In this document: piece after piece, positions 18,373 through 44,165 of the stretch
How positions within the stretch are numbered: position 1 is the stretch's first letter
How the letters are laid out: the number at the start of each line of letters is the position of its first letter
Assembly: GCF_000143415.4 (NCBI RefSeq)
Contig: NW_003314284.1
Span: 186,001 to 250,000, forward strand
Length of the DNA stretch: 64,000 nt
Direction: 5' to 3'
Origin: Selaginella moellendorffii
Lineage: Eukaryota > Plantae > Lycopodiophyta
The notes under the pieces: generated by a model
Told to the model about the DNA's origin: nothing
Database searches by the model: none
What the model saw: only the letters and a program-made list of their open reading frames with translations
Position numbers and translations under genes: made by a program

Positions 18373-20260
18373 GCGTTGCTGAAGTCATCAACGTCATCTT
18401 TCATTTGGTCTTCGGATTGTGAGCCGGTGTTCAGGGATCTCAAAGAGTTATTGACAACTCCTCCGGTTTTGGCATATCCTGACTACACTCGACCTTTTAT
18501 TTTGCGCATGGATGCTTCTGACATTGGTCTTAGAGGTGTGTTAATGCAAGAGAGCTCGAGTGTGCCTGGTCAGCGCCATCCCATTGCATATATAAGCTGT
18601 ACATTACAACCAGTGGAGAGGAACTACTCCACGACAGAGAAGGAGTGTTTAGCAGCAGTCTGGGGTTTCGAGAAACTTCATGCATATCTATATGGTTCTC
18701 GGACGTTACTTGAAGGTGACCATGTTGCTGTTACTTCGTTATTGAAGCGGAAGAACCTAGTTGGTCGTACTACTCGGTGGGCTTTGAAACTTCAGATATA
18801 TGATTTTGATGTTGTTCATTGCCCAGGGAGTTCTATGGCTAATGCTGATGCCCTTTCTCGAGCTCCTCTTCCTTCTCCACTCTCTTCTCATGTTTTTGAC
18901 AAGCCTGTTGTTCCAGCATCTGTGGATTTTCTAGACGAGGATTCTGTGCTATCAGCAGTTGCTATACTTGACGTTCAGTGTCCACAAGGTGCATAGCAAA
19001 ATCTACCTTCACTTGATGAGGTTCGCGAGGCTCAAAAGCTTGAGCCGTGGATTCGAAGGCTTCGAGATGGGTTTGAGAATCCTGCATCACTTGCTGATGA
19101 CTTGCCTTTCCGACATTTACATTCTCAATATCGCCTTGAAGATGCCCTTCTTTGTTTTGTGGGGACGGATCCTGATGATCATTTACGGCCGGTGGTGCCT
19201 TCTATCTTTATTCCATAGTTTTTCCATGCTTACCATGATTCTCCTATTCTAGGTGGGCATATGGGACATCATCATGTAATCGAGAAGCTGCGTAGGTCTT
19301 TCTATTGGGCGGAGATGCGATGTGATATTATCCGGTACGTGCGTAACTGCGTTTGGTGCCAAGCTCGTAATACTCCCCCTCGGGCTGCAGAAGGACGGTT
19401 GGAGTCAATTGCAGTTTCCCGTCCGTTTGAGTTGGTGGCGTTTGATCTTATGGGACCTTTTCCACGGTCGACTGCTAGCAATGAGTATGTTATTATTGTT
19501 TTTGACTATTTGACTTGTTGGGTGGAAGTTGGTGCTCTTGCTAGCACCTCTGCAATTGCTGTTGGATACTTCCTCCTCAATCGAGTGGTGTTCCAGCATT
19601 CTTGTCCAGAGTGGATTCTTTCGGATAATGGTCCCACATTTATGGCTGAGGCATTTCATGTTTTGACGTCTCAGTTGGGGATACGCCACACTTTCACGAG
19701 TGCTTATCATCCACAATCAGACAGTCTGGTGGAACAGCTCGTTCGGACATTCAAGGGGATGATTGTGAAGTATATGAACTTTCAGCATTTAGATTGGGAT
19801 GGTTATTTGCCATCTCTTCGGTATGCATATGTCACTAGGGTGCAGAGTTCTATTGGTGCTTCACCATATAAACTCCTATATGGTCATGATCCAATATTAC
19901 CAACAAAGCTGGGTTTACCTTCTCGATTGCCACAAGCTGCGGATGCTAGGTCATGGGATTAGTATTTGACGAGCATTCTTCCACTTGTCCGAGCGGAGTC
20001 TGCCGAACACTTAGGCCGCGTACAAGTGGGACAACAACGGCGGTACAACTCCCATCATCGTCCACCTGCGAAGTACAAAGTGGATGATTTGGTGTTAGTC
20101 CGTTTTCCCCATCTTACGGTACGTGGTTTATCTAAGGGGCTCCTTGCACAGAGGATCAGCCTGCTGGACGTCATGCCGAACCGCATAAACTTATGGTCCA
20201 ACTTGTCGCAACACCCAATACGGTCCTTTCCACTATTGTGCATATGCAGCGGTTAAAATG
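18373..20260 (+). pseudogene. Element A RNaseH - integrase
   Basis: PPVLAYPDYTRPFILRMDASD, ERNYSTTEKECLA, NADALSR; HHCC zinc finger (HDSPILGGHMG...CVWCQ), DLMGP, SDNG, AYHPQSD. Confidence 0.93.
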
Positions 20261-22196: not shown

Positions 22197-24027
22197 TTAC
22201 GAGGCGAGCTGTGTCACAAAGAGAGGCAAGTGCTCCCATTCAATATCAGGAGCTAGATTAAAGAACAACCACTCTAGATTTGGAAGACTGGCAGCCAAAT
22301 CATCCTTGAATTCTGACTGTCCAATGTGTAAATTAGTAAGACCCAGATCTCTAAGAAGTGTGAATGATCCATCCAGGTTGAACAAGTGGATACCACCGCA
22401 GTCAATGTCAAGTGTTTCTAGGCGGTGGGGCAACCATTCAAAGCTGTCATCACTATTTTCACTGTCTTCTACCGATGTAAAACTGTTGAAGCCTGATTGA
22501 GTTCTTAAACATTCGCTTCAAGGGAGCTCTGCTGACGGACTCCACATCAATTTCACATGTTGTTAGGTTGATAAGTTGCCATCGTCCAACGACACTGGCA
22601 AATGCGATGCTGTCTGCCCATAAAACCAATGTTTCAATGCTCCAGTGTCCCCATGCTTTCTGGCACCTTCATTGTACCCTGTGTCATTTCTAGATTTAAA
22701 TGTCTTAGTTTACGTGAAATTCCAGTCAAATCCAAAACTGATGAGTCCTCTTTTGAACTAACATTCAGCCCCAGCTCTTCCAAGTCGGAGAGCTGGGGCA
22801 GTAATGCAATGTTACACTTCATCGGCATCCACCGGGTAGTACATTTTAGATATTTCAGTGATGTCAGGCTGAAAAGCGCATCTGGTAATTCACTCACTTC
22901 TGTTCCTTGAATGTCAAGCACTTGAAGGTTTTTCAGCTTGGATATGCTCTCTGGAATAAAACGCATCTTAGAGCATCGCCACAAGCTCAATACCTTGACA
23001 CCTTGTATGTGATTGATGAAACTGTCATCCACATTAGAAAGTCCTTCACATTTATCCAGAAGTAAGACATCACGCACATGATTATCGGATAGAAAGCTGC
23101 CAACATTCTTTGAGATGAATGAAACTTCAGCAAATGTTGCATCCCGAATGCCAATTGTCCAGTCATATCCGAACAGGCATCCCTTCTCGTGCTCTTGCTG
23201 TGAACCGTACTTCCCTTTTAAGATTCTTATGCACAGTTTGCGTAGCATATCGTGTACAATTATACGATCATCGTCATCCCAAGACTTATTTATCTTGACC
23301 AGGCATCTCCGTTCCAGTTCATTGACAATCGCTGTGGGTGAGAGTTCTGACCCAACCTCCATCCAACATTTCCTCAAGTCAGTGAACTCAATCTCCTCGT
23401 CTTCTGGGAATGCGGCCACATAAAGAAACCACTCTTGCAAGCTTTTCACCCTCATAGTTTCCCAGCTCGTCATAGCTGAACTTCAAGCGCTTGAACATCT
23501 GCTTCTCAACGTCTGGGTCATTGGACAAGTGCAACCTCTTATATCATTCTTCCCACACAAGTGGCCCTTCTCTTCTGTGGACAGCCATGGCACTGCCAAT
23601 CACTTCCAGGGCTAGAGGAAGTCCCTCACATTTTTGAGCTATTTCCTTGGCAAATCCCACAACATCAGGGTCACTGGGTTGTGGATCATGCACACCGAAG
23701 GCAAACTTCCAAAACATCTTTTTGCTTTCGTCCATTGATAGCTGATGCACAGGAAATGCCTTTGCATCCAGGCTGCGCAAAATGCCTTCCTTTCTGGTTG
23801 TCACCAGGATCCGGCCAGAGGATGGCTGTGCTATAAAATCCAGTTCCTTTGCCCAGCTCCAGTCCCAGACATCATCCAGTACCAGCAAGACACGGTTACC
23901 AGCAGCAACATCGTGTGCCAAGTGCTTCATGTCGTCAAGGGTTCCTCTGGCCCTCTCTTTCATTTCACCCCATTCAAGAGCGTTGAGGAGCTGGGCCTTG
24001 AGATCGTCCTCCGAAGCATCTTTCTTC
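22197..24027 (-). pseudogene. NB-ARC-LRR (NLR) paralogue fragment, 5'-truncated at the hAT TIR
   Basis: VLLVLDDVWD, GRILVTTR, GLPLAL, IIVHDML and LRRs, highly similar to 40876-43147; frameshifted; P-loop missing. Confidence 0.9.
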
Positions 24028-32710: not shown

Positions 32711-32789
32711 GCCTCCCGTTAAACACCATCCTGATTCATTCTCTCTCCGCTTACCTGGCGATGATGTGGACAATGATTGGAGGGTGCGG

Positions 32790-34389
32790 CAGCATTTCCA
32801 TGACAACATTGTGTGGATCACTGTGAAGAAAGATGCTTCGGAGGACGATCTCAAGGAGCTCCTCAACGCTCTTGAATGGGGTGAAATGAAAGAGAGGATT
32901 TTATAGCAGGGCCATCCTCTGGCCAGATCCTGGTGACAACCAGAAAGGAAGGCATTTTGCATCCGGATGCAAAGGCATTTGCTGTGCATGAGCTATCAAT
33001 GGACGAAAGCAAAAAGATGTTTTGGAAGTTTGCCTTCAGTGTGCATGATCCACAACCCAGTGACCCTGATGTTGTGGGATTTGCCAAGAAAATAGCTCGA
33101 AAATGTGAGGGACTTCCTCTCGCTCTGGAAGTGATTGGCAGTGCCATGGCTGTCCACAGAAGAGAAGGGCCACATGTGTGGGAAGAACGATATAAGAGGT
33201 TGCACTTGTCCAATGACCCAGATGTTGAGAAGCAGATGTTCAAACGCTTGAAGTTCAGCTATGACGAGCTGGGAAACTATGAGGGTGAAAAGCTGCAAGA
33301 GAGCTTTCTCTATGTGGCTGCATTCCCACACAAATTAATTGAATTTAGTTCCTTGAGCAAATGTTGGATGGAGGTTGGGTCAGAACTCTCACCCACAGCG
33401 ATTGTCAATGAACTGGAACGGAGATGCCTGGTCAAGATAGATAAGTCTTGGGGGTATGAAGAAGCTCCTGGTTATATAATCGTACACGATATGCTACCAT
33501 CTGACTCACTTTTGTTCCTCGAATGTCAAGCACTTGAAGGTTTTTCAGCTTGGAAATGCTCTCTGGAATAAAATGGATCCTAGAGCATCGCCACAAGCTC
33601 AATACCTTGACACCTTGTATGTGATTGATAAGACTGTCATCCACATTAGAAAGTCCTATACATTCATCCATAAGTATAGCGCTTTTCAGCCTGACATCAC
33701 TGAAATATCTAAAATCTACTTAGTGGACGCCCATAAAGTGTAACATTGCATTACTGCCCCAGCTCTCCAACTTGGAAGAGCTGGAGCTGAGCCTTGATTC
33801 AAAAGAGGAGTCATCAGTTGTGGATTTGACTGGAATTTCACGTAAACTAAGACTTCTAGATCTAAGAATGACACATGGTACAATGAAGGTGCCAGAAAGC
33901 ATGGGGACATTGGAGCACATTGAAACATTGGTTTTACATGCAAACAACATTGACTTTGCCAGTTTCGTTGGGTTATGGCAACTTGTCAACCTAACAAAAT
34001 GTCTAATTCGTGTGAGAACCGTCAGCAGAGCTACTTGGAAACAAATGTTTATGAAATCAATCAAGCTTCAACATTTTTCCATCGTTGGGGTAGAAGACAG
34101 TGAAAGTAGTGATGACAGCTTCGAATGGTTGCAACTACAATATTTAGACATCCGTGATATCATAAACCTATCTTGGTTGCCCCATAGAAACATTTTTTTA
34201 TTAAATGCAATCGTATCCACTTCTTCAACCTGGATGGATCATTCCCAAGTCTTGAAAGGCTGTGGCTTACTAATCTACGCATTGCACAGTCAAAATTCAA
34301 GGATGATTTGGCTGCCAGTCTTCCAAATCTGAAAGAGTTGCACTTTTGGCTAGCTCCTGATATTGAATGGGAGCAATTGCCTCTCTTCA
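32790..34389 (+). pseudogene. Inverted NB-ARC-LRR fragment of the NLR, with a nested micro-inversion at about 33498-33672
   Basis: GLPLAL, IIVHDML and LRRs on +. The segment MDECIGLSNVDDSLINHIQG...LDIRGTKVSQ lies on -. Confidence 0.88.
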
Positions 34390-34490
34390 CGAGAGCCTGC
34401 ATTTTCGTCGCAGCGCCCTGGATGTACACGGCCTGGATCCGCTTCTCACGCTCGATGCGCAGAGTGAGAGGCAACCCCTGCGTTAATCCG
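34390..34490 (-). pseudogene. Displaced IQ-motif exon of the channel
   Basis: GLPLTLRIEREKRIQAVYIQGAATKMQALV, reverse complement of about 40545-40643. Confidence 0.85.
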
Positions 34491-34509: not shown

Positions 34510-35085
34510 TCCCAACAGTCCAACCCATTTGCTACGGGCTTCAGGATCCAAGAGGGCATTCACCACCTCATCCAGCAGTTGCTCATGGCCCCCAAACATG
34601 GGATCAGGAAAAACACGCCGTACATATTTTTTTGCAGGGCCTCTGTCTTGCGGGGAACTCCGTACGGCGAAGCTAGTGCTCGGCTGTATCACTCTCAACT
34701 CTTCTCGCTCGTACCTTTCAATTTTCGGAAGGAGATCGTCCTCGTAGCTGTGTATCAGCTCCGAGATCTTGTCACAACGCTTCTCCCTGTGAAACATCCA
34801 TAGATCATTTAGCTGTACTGTTAAAGCTCTCAAGTGTATATGCTTACTGTGATCCCAGCAGTGCTTGCGCCTTGTCGTTCCATTTTGTGACAAGATCAAG
34901 ACACTCCTCGGCTCCATCAGAGTAGCGGAACTCTGGATTCCGGTGCTTGTGAGTATTAAACTTGTTAAGCATGGCCTGAATGCTGGTCGCCCCCTTGTCC
35001 AGCTTCGCAATGTCCACATTCAGCTCGTGCCCGTGACTTTCGATCTGCGACAGGAGATCGTGGTAGGAGCTTATGCACTCCATAA
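34510..35085 (-). pseudogene. NLR N-terminal fragment (second N-repeat up to just before the P-loop); exon 1 deleted
   Basis: MECISSYHDLLSQIESHGH...KWVGLLG, matches about 43245-43812. Confidence 0.88.
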
Positions 35086-35517
35086 TAGGAATGGAGTCCT
35101 TTTAAAACCGTTGTTTCGGCTCTCTGGTACATAGCATGTCAAGCTTGCGAGCCTTTGAATCATTTGAGAGCATAGCCTGCGTGGAACTTGTCTGCGTCAA
35201 TTCTCGACAGCAGAAGCTGCGAGAAGAATTTAAAGTTCCAAGTGTAAGCAAACCAAGACTTGTATGTACCTTGAATGAAACTTAACACGAAACAATTAGT
35301 TCGATGCTTTACACCAATCAAAGCTTTGAACAAATAGCACACGCTCCTACGCTTTCCCAATACACAAAACACGGAGCACTGGAGAAAGGATACTGATAGC
35401 AAAGAAACAAACTCTACTTACAGTATAAACCCCGCTTATCGTCCTAATTTTCAAAACCGCTCTGGCCACCACAGGCAAAACATCACGCAAGGGTCCATTC
35501 TAACAAAAACCTGACCT

Positions 35518-37282
35518 TCATGCTGCAACAGGAGAATCCGGAGCTGATCCAATTGAAGAAGCTTCGGGATCCTTAGGCAAGGCAACGTAATTCATCATCG
35601 GAGAGTAGCGTTTCACCCGGCTACCCTTTTGAGGACCCTGATTGCTAGCCTTAGGTGCGGGTAAGGGCTCAGGGACTATCGAAAGTCGTCGGTTTGCATT
35701 GTTTCCACTCACGCGAAGTCCCACCTGTCCCTTTTTGGACGGCTTTGTGCCGTAGAGCAGCTCCTGCTCAGTTTGCAGTTGTTCCTGCATTCTCTTCTCC
35801 TCCTGCATTTAGCCAGTTAACGTCTTAACAGGCACTAAACTGCAGAGTTACCCTCAGTCGGCGCTTTTCTTCTTCTTTCTCTCGTCGTAGCAAGCTATAT
35901 TCTTCTAGAATTGCCAGTAGAGAAATCTGCAAAGCACTTTCAGAAGCGTCTACGAAAATCACTTACGTACCCCGTTATATAAGAAGGGCCTGCCTCTTTC
36001 GTCCTCCCAAGACCGCGTTTTGGACTTCAATGATTCAAGAAGATCTGCAAACGGGTTGTGAAAACTGAGAAAAGGAAATAGCAAACGAAGAATTCAAACG
36101 CACTGGGGAGTTTGGCCACGATGACACGAGCTCTTTCTGCACGTTTTAGATTCAAATGTGCTCCTCTGGTTGCATTGAAGCGGCTTTCATCCTACAATCG
36201 AAAATGAATAAGTGAAATAGCGTAACGCTCATACCTTATTGTATTCTTCAAGCTTGCTTTCTTCTTCACACGCACTAATCCACCGTTCCATTCATTCCAT
36301 TATATCTTGTCTGCCGAGTGATTCTTCCTTCTCCTCGGCGATACTACTTTCGATTGTAGCAAGTAGTTCTGACAAGTCCACTATCCCTGTGCACACGAAA
36401 CATCAGCCAGGAAATGCACACAGAATAAATTTTTACCTGACTCCCGATCGTCTTGGCTAAGTTCTCTAGCGTCTCATCGCTAATACTTCTGCTCTGGCCT
36501 GGATCACAAAGGCTCGGATGCACTTCCTTGACAGCCTCGGTGTAGTCTGCCCCCAACAGGACGCAATATCCCTGCAGAACCTCGAGAAGCTCTGAGAATT
36601 TGTGGAGCCGGCTACTCTGGAAATGTCACTTGTAAGAAAAAAGAATGCCAACCGTGCCAATACAAACCAACCTTTACATCCTGAAGCTCTTGAACCTGGC
36701 AATGGTACTCATACAGCTTTCTCAGCAACAAACCTTTCCAAGAAAAAGCTCCATTCTCGGCCTCTTGCAATGCCCCTGGCGATATCTCCTGAGAGAGCCT
36801 TTGTGTCTGGCATTGCACGTCCTCAAATTGCTTCCGCCGCTCCTCTTTCCTCAGACGCAAGCATTCTAACTGAGGTGAGACGGACAAGAGCTGCTCTCGC
36901 AGAGTAGTGCCCGACCTCTTCTCTAACTGAAAGGAAGAACAACGGGCATTAGAAAAGCACTGTGAGATGGATCAAACAACGCGTACCATGCAAGGGCGAT
37001 CACCCAGGAGCGACAGGAGCGACGCGAGCTCCGACTCGGAATCCGCCAGCAGCTGGTGCAGCCGAGCCCTCGCGCAATTCGCTTGATCCACCTTTCGCCG
37101 GTACACATCCAGGCATTCTTGCTCCAGCTGGAGCAGCATTCTGTCCCTCTCCTCGTCGCTCTCCCCCATCTCCTCCGCGCGGGCGATCCACCGCGATCGT
37201 GAGAAACTCCAGAGGTAATATTTCGCGAGGTTACCTGGAGCTCCCGCAGCAGCGATCGGCAAGTCGTGTCCTCGCCTTCCAT
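35518..37282 (-). pseudogene. MAP65: MAP65 duplicate with an internal deletion of about 440 bp and a damaged exon-2 acceptor
   Basis: Collinear with 45161-47376 but lacks about 46088-46526; further substitutions and indels. Confidence 0.85.
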
Positions 37283-37435
37283 GGCCTCCAGAATCAAAAT
37301 GCGAGTCCCCAGATCACTCAAAACAATCAAGAATCCTCCGCGAGAACGCCGCCGCCCTCGCCATCGCCCCCTGCTCCAACCTAAACCTTTTACGCCTGCC
37401 ACGTGTTACAGAGCCTAAACCAGCGACAAATATTC

Positions 37436-40875: not shown

Positions 40876-43800
40876 TTAAAACTTACGTATCTTGAGATTG
40901 GGGCGGTCCTCAAGCCAAGGTGGAATTTTCATGCCTTCCGGGCAGTCTAGCCTTTTCAGCCTGGGAAATGCGCCCTGGCTGTGATTGTGGGACCACAGTG
41001 CATCGTTAAGTATCATGCTTGGCCTAAAAATTCCAAGACGTTTCAAACCTGGCAGCGATGCAATGGACGATGGAACTATACTCTCATCACAGCTCAAGTG
41101 CACGGTTTCTATATCAGTCATTTGATCTGATGGCTCAAAAAAATCATTTTGCATCTTCTTGCTCGATACTGAAAGAAATTGAACCTTGAGTGATGACCTC
41201 TCGGTTGGCAACAACAGTCTCTTTATGCAACCCGTTATTCTCAGAACCCCGAGGCGATTGGGGAGCTGTGCCACAAAGAGAGGCAAGTGCTCCCATTTAA
41301 TATCAGGAGCTAGCTCAAACTCCAACTTCTTCAGATTTGGAAAACTGGCAGCAAAATCATCCTTGAATTCTGACTGTGCAATGTGTAGATTAGTAAGTAT
41401 CAGAAATTCAACACCTGGGAATGGTCCATGGACCAGGTTGAAGAAGTGGATACGACTGCAGTCAATTTCAAGTTTTTCTAGGCGGTGGGGCAACCAAGAG
41501 AGGTTTATAATTTCACGGATGCGTAAATATCGTAGTTGCAGCCATTCAAAGCTGTCATCATTATTTTCACTGTCTTCTACCCCAGAAATGGAAAAATCTT
41601 TAAGCCTGATTGATTTCTTAAACATTCGCTTCAACGGAAGTCTACTGACGGATTCCATATGAATTTCACATGTTCTTAGGTTGACAAGTTGCCATAGCCC
41701 AACGAAACTGGCAAAGTCGATATTGTTTGCATGTAAAACCAATGTTTCAATGTGCTCCAGTGTCCCCATGCTTTCTGGCACCTTCATTGTACCATGTGTC
41801 ATTCTTAGATCTAGAAGTCTTAGTTTACCTGAAATTCCAGTCAAATCCACAACTGATGACTCCTCTTTTGAATCAAGGGTCAGCTCCAGCTCTTCCAAGT
41901 TGGAGAGCTGGGGAAGTAATGCAATGTTACACTTTATCGGCGTCCACTGAGTAGATTTTAGATATTTCAGTGATGTCAGGCTGAAAAGTGCATCTGGTAG
42001 TTGACTCACTTTTGTTCCTCGAATGTCAAGCACTTGAAGGTTTTTCAGCTTGGAAATGCTCTCTGGAATAAAACGGATCCTATAGCATCGCCACAAGCTC
42101 AATACCTTGACACCTTGTATGTGATTGATAAGACTGTCATCCACATTAGAAAATCCTTTACATTCATCCATAAGTAAGACATCTCGCACATGATTATCAG
42201 ATAAAAAGCTGCCAACATTCTTTGAGATGAATGAGACTTTAGCAAATGTTGCATCCTGAATGCCAATTGGCCAATCATATCCAAACAGGGATCCCTTCTC
42301 GTGCTCTTGCTGTGGACCGTACTTCCCTTTTAAGATTTTTATGCACAGTTTGCGTAGCATATCGTGTACGATTATATAACCAGGAGCTTCTTCATCCCTC
42401 AAAGACTTATATATCTTGACCAGGCATTTCCGTTCCAGTTCATTAACAATCGCTGTGGGTGAGAGTTCTGACCCAACCTCCATCCAACATTTACCCAACT
42501 CAGTAAACTCAATCGACCTATCTTCTGGGAATGCAGCCACATAGAGAAAGCACTCTTGCAGCTTTTCACCCTCATAGTTTCCCAGCTCGTCATAGCTGAA
42601 CTTCAAGCGCTTGAACATCTGCTTCTCAACGTCTGGGTCATTGGACAAGTGCAACCTCTTATACCGTTCTTCCCACACATGTGGCCCTTCACTTCTGTGG
42701 GCAGCCATGGCACTGCCAATCACTTCCAGAGCGAGAGGAAGTCCCTTACATTTTCGAGCTATTTTCTTGGCAAATCCCACAACATCAGGGTCACTGGGTT
42801 GTGGATCATGCACACCAAAGGCAAACTTCCAAAACATCTTTTTGCTTTCGTCCATTGATAGCTGATGCACAGGAAATGCCTTTGCATCCAGACTGCGCAA
42901 AATGCCTTCCTTTCTGGTTGTTACCAGGATCCGGCCAGAGCATGGCCCTGCTATAAAATCCAGTTCCTTTGCCCAGCTCCAGTCCCAGACATCATCCAGT
43001 ACCAGCAAGACACGGTTACCACCAGCAACATCGCGTGCCAAGTGCTGCATGTCGTCAAGGCTTCCTTTGGCCCTCTCTTTCATTTCACCCCATTCAAGAG
43101 CGTTGAGGAGCTGGGCCTTGAGATCGTCCTCCGAAGCATCTTTCTTCACAGTGATCCACACAATGTTGTCATGGAAATGCTCCCGCACCCTCTCGTCATT
43201 GTGCGCGCAGCTTGCGAGGGTGGTTTTTCCACACCCTCCCATTCCCAACAGTCCAACCCATTTGCTACGGGCTTCAGGATCCAAGAGGGCATTCACCACC
43301 TCATCCAGCAGTTGCTCATGGGCCCCAAACATGGCCTCAGGAACAACACGCCGTACATATTTTTTTGCAGGGCCTCTGTCTTGCGGGGAACTCCGTACGG
43401 CGAAGCTAGTGCTCGGCTTTATCACTCTCAACTCTTCTCGCTCGTACCTTTCCATTTTCGGAAGGAGATCGCCCTCGTAGCTGTGTATCAGCTTCGAGAT
43501 CTCGCCATAACGCTTCTCCCTGTGAAAGATCCACAGATATTTTAGCTTTACTGTTAGAGCTCTTGTGTAAGCTTACTGTGATCCCAGCAGTGCTTGCGCC
43601 TCGTCGTTCCATTTTGTGACAAGATCAAGACACTCCTCGGCTCCATCAGAATAGCGGAACTCTGGATTCCGGTGCTTGTGAGTATGAAACTTGTTAAGCA
43701 AGGCCTGGATGCTGGCCCCCCCCTTTTCCAGCATCGCAATGTTCACATTCAGCTCGTGCCCGTGACTTTCGATCTGCGACAGGAGATCCTGGTAGGAGCT

Positions 43801-44165
43801 TATGCACTCCATGATCTTGCCACTCCGCTTGTACCTATAGGAAGAAATAAATTCAGCCTTCTTGCACAAAAATGCTGCAAAACATACCGTCTAACGGGGT
43901 TCCAGATCCTGTTGTTGCGTGATCCCAAGAGTTCTTGCGCCTTGCTATCCCATTTCCTGACACGCTCCAAGCATTCCTCGGCCGCTTCAGAAAACATAAA
44001 GCCTGGATTCCGCTGCTTGTGCTCACTGAAAGCGTTGACCTTGGCCTGGATGTTGGGCGCCATATTCTCCAGCCTTTCAATGTTGGCATTGGAGTTCCAA
44101 ACCTTCTTGGCAGCACCCAGACCCAAGCCACACAGCGGGCTCACCAAGCCGCTCACAACCTCCAT
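40876..44165 (-). CDS. Intact NLR immune receptor: tandem N-terminal helical (CC-like) domains - NB-ARC - LRR; exons 44165-43888, 43834-43577, 43519-40876; 1059 aa
   Basis: Two phase-2 GT-AG introns (53 and 57 nt) give one open frame. P-loop GMGGCGKTT, kinase-2 VLLVLDDVW, RNBS-B GRILVTTR, GLPL, RNBS-D CFLYVAAFPED, VHD in place of MHD, then LRRs. Confidence 0.93.

Follow-up and report, generated by a model that had tools for sequence, protein, structure and literature searches.

An NLR gene of three exons

The window analysed here is a stretch of 64,000 nucleotides (nt) from scaffold GL377588.1 of the lycophyte Selaginella moellendorffii. On its minus strand, from 44165 to 40876, it carries an intact three-exon gene for a nucleotide-binding leucine-rich repeat receptor (NLR), and the interval singled out in a first-pass annotation of this DNA is the 5' end of that gene. 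The encoded protein displays two N-terminal helical modules, followed by an NB-ARC domain and by leucine-rich repeats (LRRs). From its anatomy and its evolutionary history, we consider it likely that the gene is a coiled-coil (CC) NLR whose CC domain was doubled in part by an intron-containing tandem duplication. The gene model was read straight from the minus-strand sequence, on splice sites and open frames, and comprises the following features, in which helices of the second module carry a prime and L001, L003 and L005 are paralogous loci.

43888..44165, minus strand: exon 1, 278 nt; helices a1, a2 and a3 of module 1 plus loop, starting at ATG 44165
44091..44165, minus strand: helix a1, residues 1-25; hydrophobic and present once only, the copy-2 rows of alignment A2 having no counterpart
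43835..43887, minus strand: intron 1, 53 nt, GT-AG, phase 2; position and phase common to L001, L003 and L005
43577..43834, minus strand: exon 2, 258 nt, symmetric (2/2) in phase; closes module 1 with a4 and opens module 2 with a2' and a3'
43520..43576, minus strand: intron 2, 57 nt, GT-AG, phase 2; a duplicate of intron 1, donor and acceptor sites aligning between units
40876..43519, minus strand: exon 3; a4', linker, NB-ARC, LRR and stop, with 880 open codons
43750..44090, minus strand: repeat unit 1, 341 nt including intron 1; a2-a3-loop-a4, residues 26-123, 98 amino acids (aa)
43429..43749, minus strand: repeat unit 2, 321 nt including intron 2; a2'-a3'-a4', without a1, 88 aa
42589..43317, minus strand: NB-ARC, exon-3 residues 68-310; PF00931, E 1.2e-38 (Pfam)
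40879..42204, minus strand: LRR region; LRR_14 at E 4.5e-19 (exon-3 residues 439-668), LRR_8 and LRR_4 (Pfam)

An in-frame TGA (44189-44187) lies eight codons 5' of the ATG at 44165. By tblastn, exon 1 is 90% identical to residues 1-94 of the paralogue P0003; its length is 275-281 nt in paralogues, and both paralogue subfamilies have an exon 2 of 258 nt. Since exon 2 is 258 nt long and lies between two phase-2 introns, its skipping would, by arithmetic, keep the frame, as the first-pass annotation had pointed out; the single-domain isoform envisaged there was not found among the database paralogues. Within exon 3, whose best matches are all S. moellendorffii proteins, the NB-ARC motifs are intact (P-loop GMGGCGKTT, Walker B LLVLDDVW, GLPLAL), and further on VHD replaces MHD. 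In agreement with what had been noted beforehand, neither a TIR domain, a kinase domain nor a literal EDVID motif was found in the gene by Pfam and by reading of the sequence; the place of EDVID in helix 3 is occupied by an acidic AEECLE in a3 and AEECLD in a3'. The N-terminus (MEVVSGLVSPLCGLGL) is hydrophobic. Helix a1, which is predicted helical at a low predicted local distance difference test score (pLDDT), has a mean hydrophobicity (H) of 0.55 and a hydrophobic moment (muH) of 0.24-0.33. What had been described as an amphipathic first helix thus holds as a helix, strongly hydrophobic and of only modest amphipathicity.

A partial duplication of the N-terminal domain

In order to characterise the repeat, protein, profile and DNA comparisons were made. 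BLASTP aligned exon 1 with exon 2 at 31/57 identities (54%, E 3e-21), and hhalign of module 1 against module 2 across 12 paralogues gave a probability of 99.7% (E 2.9e-25) over 85 columns, a match that extends from 'N-A/V-N-I' at the start of helix 2 to '(H/R)EL' at the end of helix 4. Concomitantly, the two genomic units align at the DNA level in their coding sequence, donor site and acceptor site; a 30-nt insertion in unit 1, directly 5' of its donor, corresponds to the 10-residue loop RNNRIWNPVR. These data confirm that the repeat is real and far beyond chance. They bear out what the first-pass annotation had said of the spliced model, of the repeat being in tandem and of the phase-2 introns at matching places, as well as its observation that a first helix precedes repeat 1 only. 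The repeated unit is helices a2-a3-a4, that is, three of the four CC helices.

The doubled form is common to a whole family, with both modules present in at least 13 S. moellendorffii paralogue models in RefSeq (1051-1399 aa), while only one module is encoded by a sister gene, P0021 (946 aa, 44% identical). Splice mapping gave exons of 281/258/2617 nt for P0002 and of 281/258/2674 nt for P0012, the 281/258-nt exons being alike in L003 and L005; P0021 (L001) has exons of 275/2566 nt, separated at the same codon by a single phase-2 intron of 63 nt. In a tree of the units, those of copy 2 form one clade (100/99) and those of copy 1 another (92/88), and the subfamily split is mirrored inside each, which indicates one duplication, before the family diversified. 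Helix 4 of P0021 holds both 'LLSQIES', common to copy 1, and 'YERE-L', common to copy 2. From these motifs we infer that P0021 fits the ancestral single state rather than a later loss of exon 2.

We propose that a P0021-like ancestor would have possessed one CC domain (a1-a4), interrupted in the a3-a4 loop by one phase-2 intron. A segment of ~320-340 bp, with a2, a3, the intron and a4, would then have been duplicated in tandem, giving rise to the symmetric 258-nt exon 2 and inserting a CC core without a1 between the NB-ARC and the original CC. This event would have been single and would predate the split into two subfamilies, the extra module being held afterwards by purifying selection.

Between the subfamilies, the two modules have protein identities of 0.69 (module 1) and 0.64 (module 2), and the NB-ARC and the LRR have 0.68 and 0.56, respectively. 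The ratio of non-synonymous to synonymous substitution (dN/dS), determined by the Nei-Gojobori method, is 0.35-0.58 for a2-a3 of module 1, 0.48 for a2'-a3' and 0.33-0.45 for a4' of module 2, 0.33-0.49 for the NB-ARC, and 0.48-0.54 for the LRR between subfamilies; exon 1 gave 0.40 against its syntenic copy. These values support, though not strongly, the view that module 2 may be under a constraint like that on module 1 and the NB-ARC, and unlike a decaying insert. As a separate observation, the LRR (window 40879-42204) has a dN/dS of 1.37 against its syntenic counterpart P0002 (L005:10655-13267), where the NB-ARC has 0.33; such a value is the usual sign of diversifying selection and may reflect it on the recognition surface.

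Segmental duplicates are nested at this locus. Other pieces of NLR genes from this family lie in the window at 22206-24026 (minus strand), 32772-34391 (plus strand) and 34510-35119 (minus strand), the last of which comprises exon 2 with the beginning of exon 3 and comes directly after a partial MAP65 duplicate (35087-37320). About 50 kb off on the same scaffold, the locus L002 (GL377588.1:158856-178492) duplicates window 46087-40591 at 95.8% identity, with MAP65 and the NLR, and contains a second NLR copy at a distance of 10 kb from the first. The RefSeq protein P0003 (1082 aa) is a chimera of the two L002 copies, residues 1 to ~319 coming from the first and 320-1082 from the second. LOC112347592 (P0121, 181 aa, 'uncharacterized protein'; L002:13328-13926) covers only the N-terminal two exons of an NLR, read into intron 2 to a stop. 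L005 (GL377623.1:729347-752616) has the gene order of the window (heavy-metal ATPase, MAP65, NLR, ion-channel fragments, NB-ARC fragment); with an NLR only 84% identical, it probably represents either the second haplotype or a block duplicated long ago. In subfamily-B genes, two predicted RefSeq isoforms, P0007 and P0013, begin within intron 1, at an ATG (MAGSWLNFSTSY) in frame with exon 2 (L003:10322-10360; L004:10338-10376 and 18593-18631), and these models are devoid of helices 1-3 of module 1. The particular feature of the copy studied here is a truncated public gene model that omits exons 1-2. A MAP65 model in this public record extends over 11.5 kb and across the NLR, and public gene models at this locus look unreliable.

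Predicted fold and affinities of the N-terminal domain

Whole-domain analyses were run on the database paralogues P0002 and P0121, and the exons of the present gene were analysed one by one. AlphaFold2 modelled the 181-aa product of P0121 with a best pLDDT of 77.7 (helices 2-53, 62-85, 92-150 and 158-178) and full-length P0002 with a pLDDT of 75 (helices 7-52, 61-85, 91-144, 157-178 and 184-210). In these models, a4 of module 1 and a2' of module 2 make up one continuous helix (H91-144 in P0002, H92-150 in P0121), and the prediction suggests an end-to-end stack of two three-helix units resembling spectrin repeats. Helix a1, modelled with low confidence, prolongs helix 2 in the models, as it does in activated resistosomes.

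When the P0121 model was used in an unbiased structure search of 48,161 chains, the CC of the ZAR1 resistosome ranked first (Z 10.6, 3.3 Å over 107 aa, model residues 3-124 superposing on chain residues 5-137) and the wheat G10 resistosome CC third (Z 9.3, 2.2 Å over 95 aa). In a second look, the top six were all resistosome CC domains of CC-NLRs (CNLs), namely ZAR1, NRC2, Sr35, NRC3 (two entries) and NRC4, at Z 9.9-10.6; superpositions on CNL CC domains have a root-mean-square deviation of 2.0-3.3 Å over 87-107 residues. No chain of an RPW8-NLR (RNL) or of MLKL appeared in the top 50 of the structure search. The first-pass annotation had proposed AlphaFold models and a Foldseek comparison; Foldseek returned no match below E 0.1 for the 181-aa P0121 model, and CC matches were obtained via the VIA aligner only. 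The 1051-aa P0002 model matched NRC3, ZAR1 and NRC2, and its LRR part matched LRR structures; NB-ARC and LRR matches dominate this search, which is uninformative on the N-terminus. Because the list of matches is consistent and the residue ranges correspond nearly one to one, we assign the N-terminal domain, at moderate model confidence, to the CC fold of ZAR1, Sr35 and the NRC proteins. The CC-like N-terminal domain anticipated beforehand is thereby retained as a predicted fold. The 'double four-helix bundle' put forward with it fails because copy 2 has no helix 1, and the a4-a2' helix is continuous in the AlphaFold2 models.

At the sequence level, a HMMER search of 1.84 billion proteins with the module profile recovered three representative clusters, all from S. 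moellendorffii, and a word search with P0002 residues 1-200 returned paralogues only and nothing outside this species. The module profile gave only chance helical matches against PDB sequences (BRAF BRS, SNAP-25), and Pfam at E 10 on P0121 returned only sub-threshold and mostly unrelated helical families. Rx_N neighbours in the ESM Atlas (0.90) are a lead only, as is the sub-threshold Rx_N match detailed below.

With hhalign, module 1 matched a bryophyte RPW8-like CC set at a probability of 80% (E 1.4e-5, 99 columns). This set is made of the N-termini of Marchantia MARPO_0105s0002 (P0031) of a related non-flowering NLR and of an ADR1-like RNL; the angiosperm CC relates to it at about an equal level, and the RPW8 and Rx_N matches of the bryophyte-type domains themselves are sub-threshold. 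Of the RPW8-like character that had been suggested, this weak profile link is what remains, Pfam giving no support. By profile comparison, the nearest type is the bryophyte and fern CC ('CC-MAEPL', PMC11218826; 'Cbl-N', PMC12512272), exemplified by MARPO_0105s0002, which has in common with the Selaginella module the W-N-P...R-Y-K-x-G-K-I sequence at the a3-a4 turn and a hydrophobic N-terminus; it is a single CC, unlike the doubled form of Selaginella. Lycophyte CC-NLRs have been placed in the 'Cbl-N' cluster (Castel et al. 2025, PMC12512272).

Among PDB sequences, the NB-ARC matches best the RPW8-NLRs 8zf0 (8e-32) and ADR1-L2 (2e-29), with ZAR1 at 5.5e-29 and the G10 entry 9h2l at 5e-22. NCBI names the paralogues after G10 genes (At1g15890, RPS5-like), and the pattern W...LL...Y-x-x-G-K is presumably common to the G10 CC and the Selaginella module. 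Membership of the G10/ANL (RPS2/RPS5) group was nevertheless rejected: the module profile matched no G10 protein, 9h2l is not the best NB-ARC match, and the G10/ANL clade has been found in 9/10 species with Selaginella as the exception (Lee et al. 2020, PMC7756659). Among the proteins gathered for comparison, G10-type N-termini were represented by a single truncated example (P0047). The RPS2/RPS5-CC link of the first-pass annotation is without sequence support.

Alternative readings and the place of the doubled CC among plant NLRs

Several results speak against a part-doubled CC-NLR. The public entry for this copy on GL377588.1 is an 859-aa single-exon model from ATG 43455, with exons 1-2 unannotated; transcripts beginning at this ATG had been set beforehand as the sign against the spliced gene, and the start in the public entry is an annotation, not transcript evidence. 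Pfam matched no family when exons 1 and 2 were each searched alone, Rx_N (PF18052) stayed sub-threshold in P0121 (15.5 bits for a cut-off of 27.7, E 0.019), RPW8 (PF05659) had no match up to E 10 in exons 1-2 or in P0121, and 80 angiosperm CC domains gave no significant hhalign match (probability 1-6%). The five P0121 models vary widely, from a pLDDT of 78 down to 43, and P0121 is devoid of a4'; moreover, a Z of ~10, below ~13, falls in the grey zone that helical bundles reach by shape alone. The dN/dS values come from short segments, one of which, the 84-nt a4 segment of module 1, stands at 1.47. Finally, in a Marchantia tandem CC-NLR it was the internal CC, not the outer one, that gave cell death (PMC11218826).

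If the public model were right, exons 1-2 would lie outside the working transcript, as a relic or as a separate small gene, and the product would be an 859-aa NB-ARC-LRR protein starting at ATG 43455. Besides the single-exon model itself, the annotation of the L002 sister copy as an N-terminal-only 181-aa protein (LOC112347592) and the paralogue RefSeq isoforms that start inside intron 1 would agree with this. We judge it unlikely, in view of exons 1-2 being open with canonical splice sites, of a frame that runs from them 21 codons into exon 3 above ATG 43455, of their 84-91% identity to paralogue exons that RefSeq joins into full-length models, and of the dN/dS of 0.40 for exon 1 against its syntenic copy. 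Another reading concerns the identity of the domain, which could be an RPW8/CC-R bundle in an RNL-like helper family rather than the CC of a sensor CC-NLR. CNL CC domains head the structure search, whose top 50 contains no RNL or MLKL chain, and Pfam finds no RPW8 even at E 10. The NB-ARC does match the RPW8-NLRs 8zf0 and ADR1-L2 just ahead of ZAR1, whose score, however, almost equals theirs, and hhalign ties module 1 to NLR N-termini with sub-threshold or true RPW8 matches. An RNL-like family therefore appears improbable, and membership of the RNLs was rejected, the profile match to the RPW8-like bryophyte CC being the sole link.

Regarding module 2, its being intact in at least 13 paralogue models of two subfamilies, with a constant exon length of 258 nt, a dN/dS of ~0.33-0.48 and an identity of 0.64, near the NB-ARC values, makes it very unlikely that it is an insertion without function that the protein tolerates, as a neutral linker remaining from the duplication; in favour of such a linker are the missing a1 and the existence of a single-module sister gene. 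The module might also be an internal lock, in which the a1-less core keeps the receptor off until activation, its empty groove retaining a1 from module 1 or standing in for a CC partner. CC cores bury a1 at rest in ZAR1, copy 2 has a CC core without an a1 of its own, and a1 is of low confidence and not packed back in both models. This lock is pure inference, and the models are end to end, with the continuous a4-a2' helix putting module 2 away from a1; we regard it as rather doubtful.

For the part-doubled CC-NLR that we favour, module 2 is most plausibly a docking unit and a rigid spacer, a role much less certain than the anatomy and the history of the gene. The protein would act as a CC-NLR, in which the LRR may sense a pathogen cue, the NB-ARC may switch and oligomerise, and the hydrophobic a1 of the outer module would be freed to act at the membrane. 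The inner a1-less module would be a rigid three-helix extension joined to module 1 by the continuous helix, and may also serve as an NB-ARC-proximal docking unit that changes how far the executioner module reaches or how it is restrained. The inner core occupies the normal place of a CC, adjoining a linker common to the single-module gene. More speculatively, and at a probability that we put low, the a1-less inner CC core could be a working part absent from the studied resistosomes, either a spectrin-like extension that lifts the pore module off the NB-ARC ring or a socket that holds a1. If true, this would represent a new way to tune CC-NLR cell-death output, arisen once in the Selaginella lineage.

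In comparison with ZAR1, Sr35 and NRC2/3/4, the order of CC, NB-ARC and LRR is shared and module 1 superposes on their CC in predicted structure. The hallmarks of a CNL are therefore present for the NB-ARC, the LRR and, in the predicted paralogue structure, the CC fold; in contrast, the Selaginella protein has no EDVID motif and does not reach the Rx_N gathering score, carries an extra a1-less module, and has an NB-ARC identity of ~17-26%. The closest published architecture is found in Marchantia polymorpha, where Mp3g09180 and Mp3g09210 are predicted tandem CC-CC-NLRs and each CC was assayed in Nicotiana benthamiana (Chia et al. 2024, Plant Cell, PMC11218826). Both cases are NLRs of non-flowering plants with two CC-derived modules before the NB-ARC. 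The Marchantia proteins are described as having two CC domains, whereas the inner Selaginella copy has no helix 1; and only the internal CC of Mp3g09210 was active in cell death (PMC11218826), whereas in Selaginella only the outer module has a hydrophobic a1. The module profile, which matches only S. moellendorffii, argues for a tandem form that arose independently of that of Marchantia. In NLRtracker-based surveys, NLRs with two CC domains form a 'CCNL' class; as compared with this class and with the Marchantia tandem, the Selaginella protein has the two modules, and a complete CC including helix 1 is found in the outer one only.

No description of the partial CC duplication of Selaginella was found in the literature searched; the RefSeq paralogue models contain it. 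An undescribed class of NLR, as the first-pass annotation had ventured, is not upheld, as RefSeq models of at least 13 paralogues, the Marchantia tandem CC-CC-NLRs (PMC11218826) and the 'CCNL' class already exist. The gene belongs to an old, lineage-specific CC-NLR variant, made of a CC and an a1-less CC core, and not to a new receptor class. Early surveys, as cited in PMC3782705 (Yue et al.), credited S. moellendorffii with about two NLRs, and in the NLRtracker table of PMC11218826 (Data Set S1) they appear solely as NB-ARC or NB-ARC-LRR proteins, none with a CC call. Altogether, a good share of the NLRs of this lycophyte carry a divergent, partly doubled CC that is missed by domain libraries, and the coexistence of single and doubled forms in one genome provides a natural experiment on the role of the CC core apart from helix 1.

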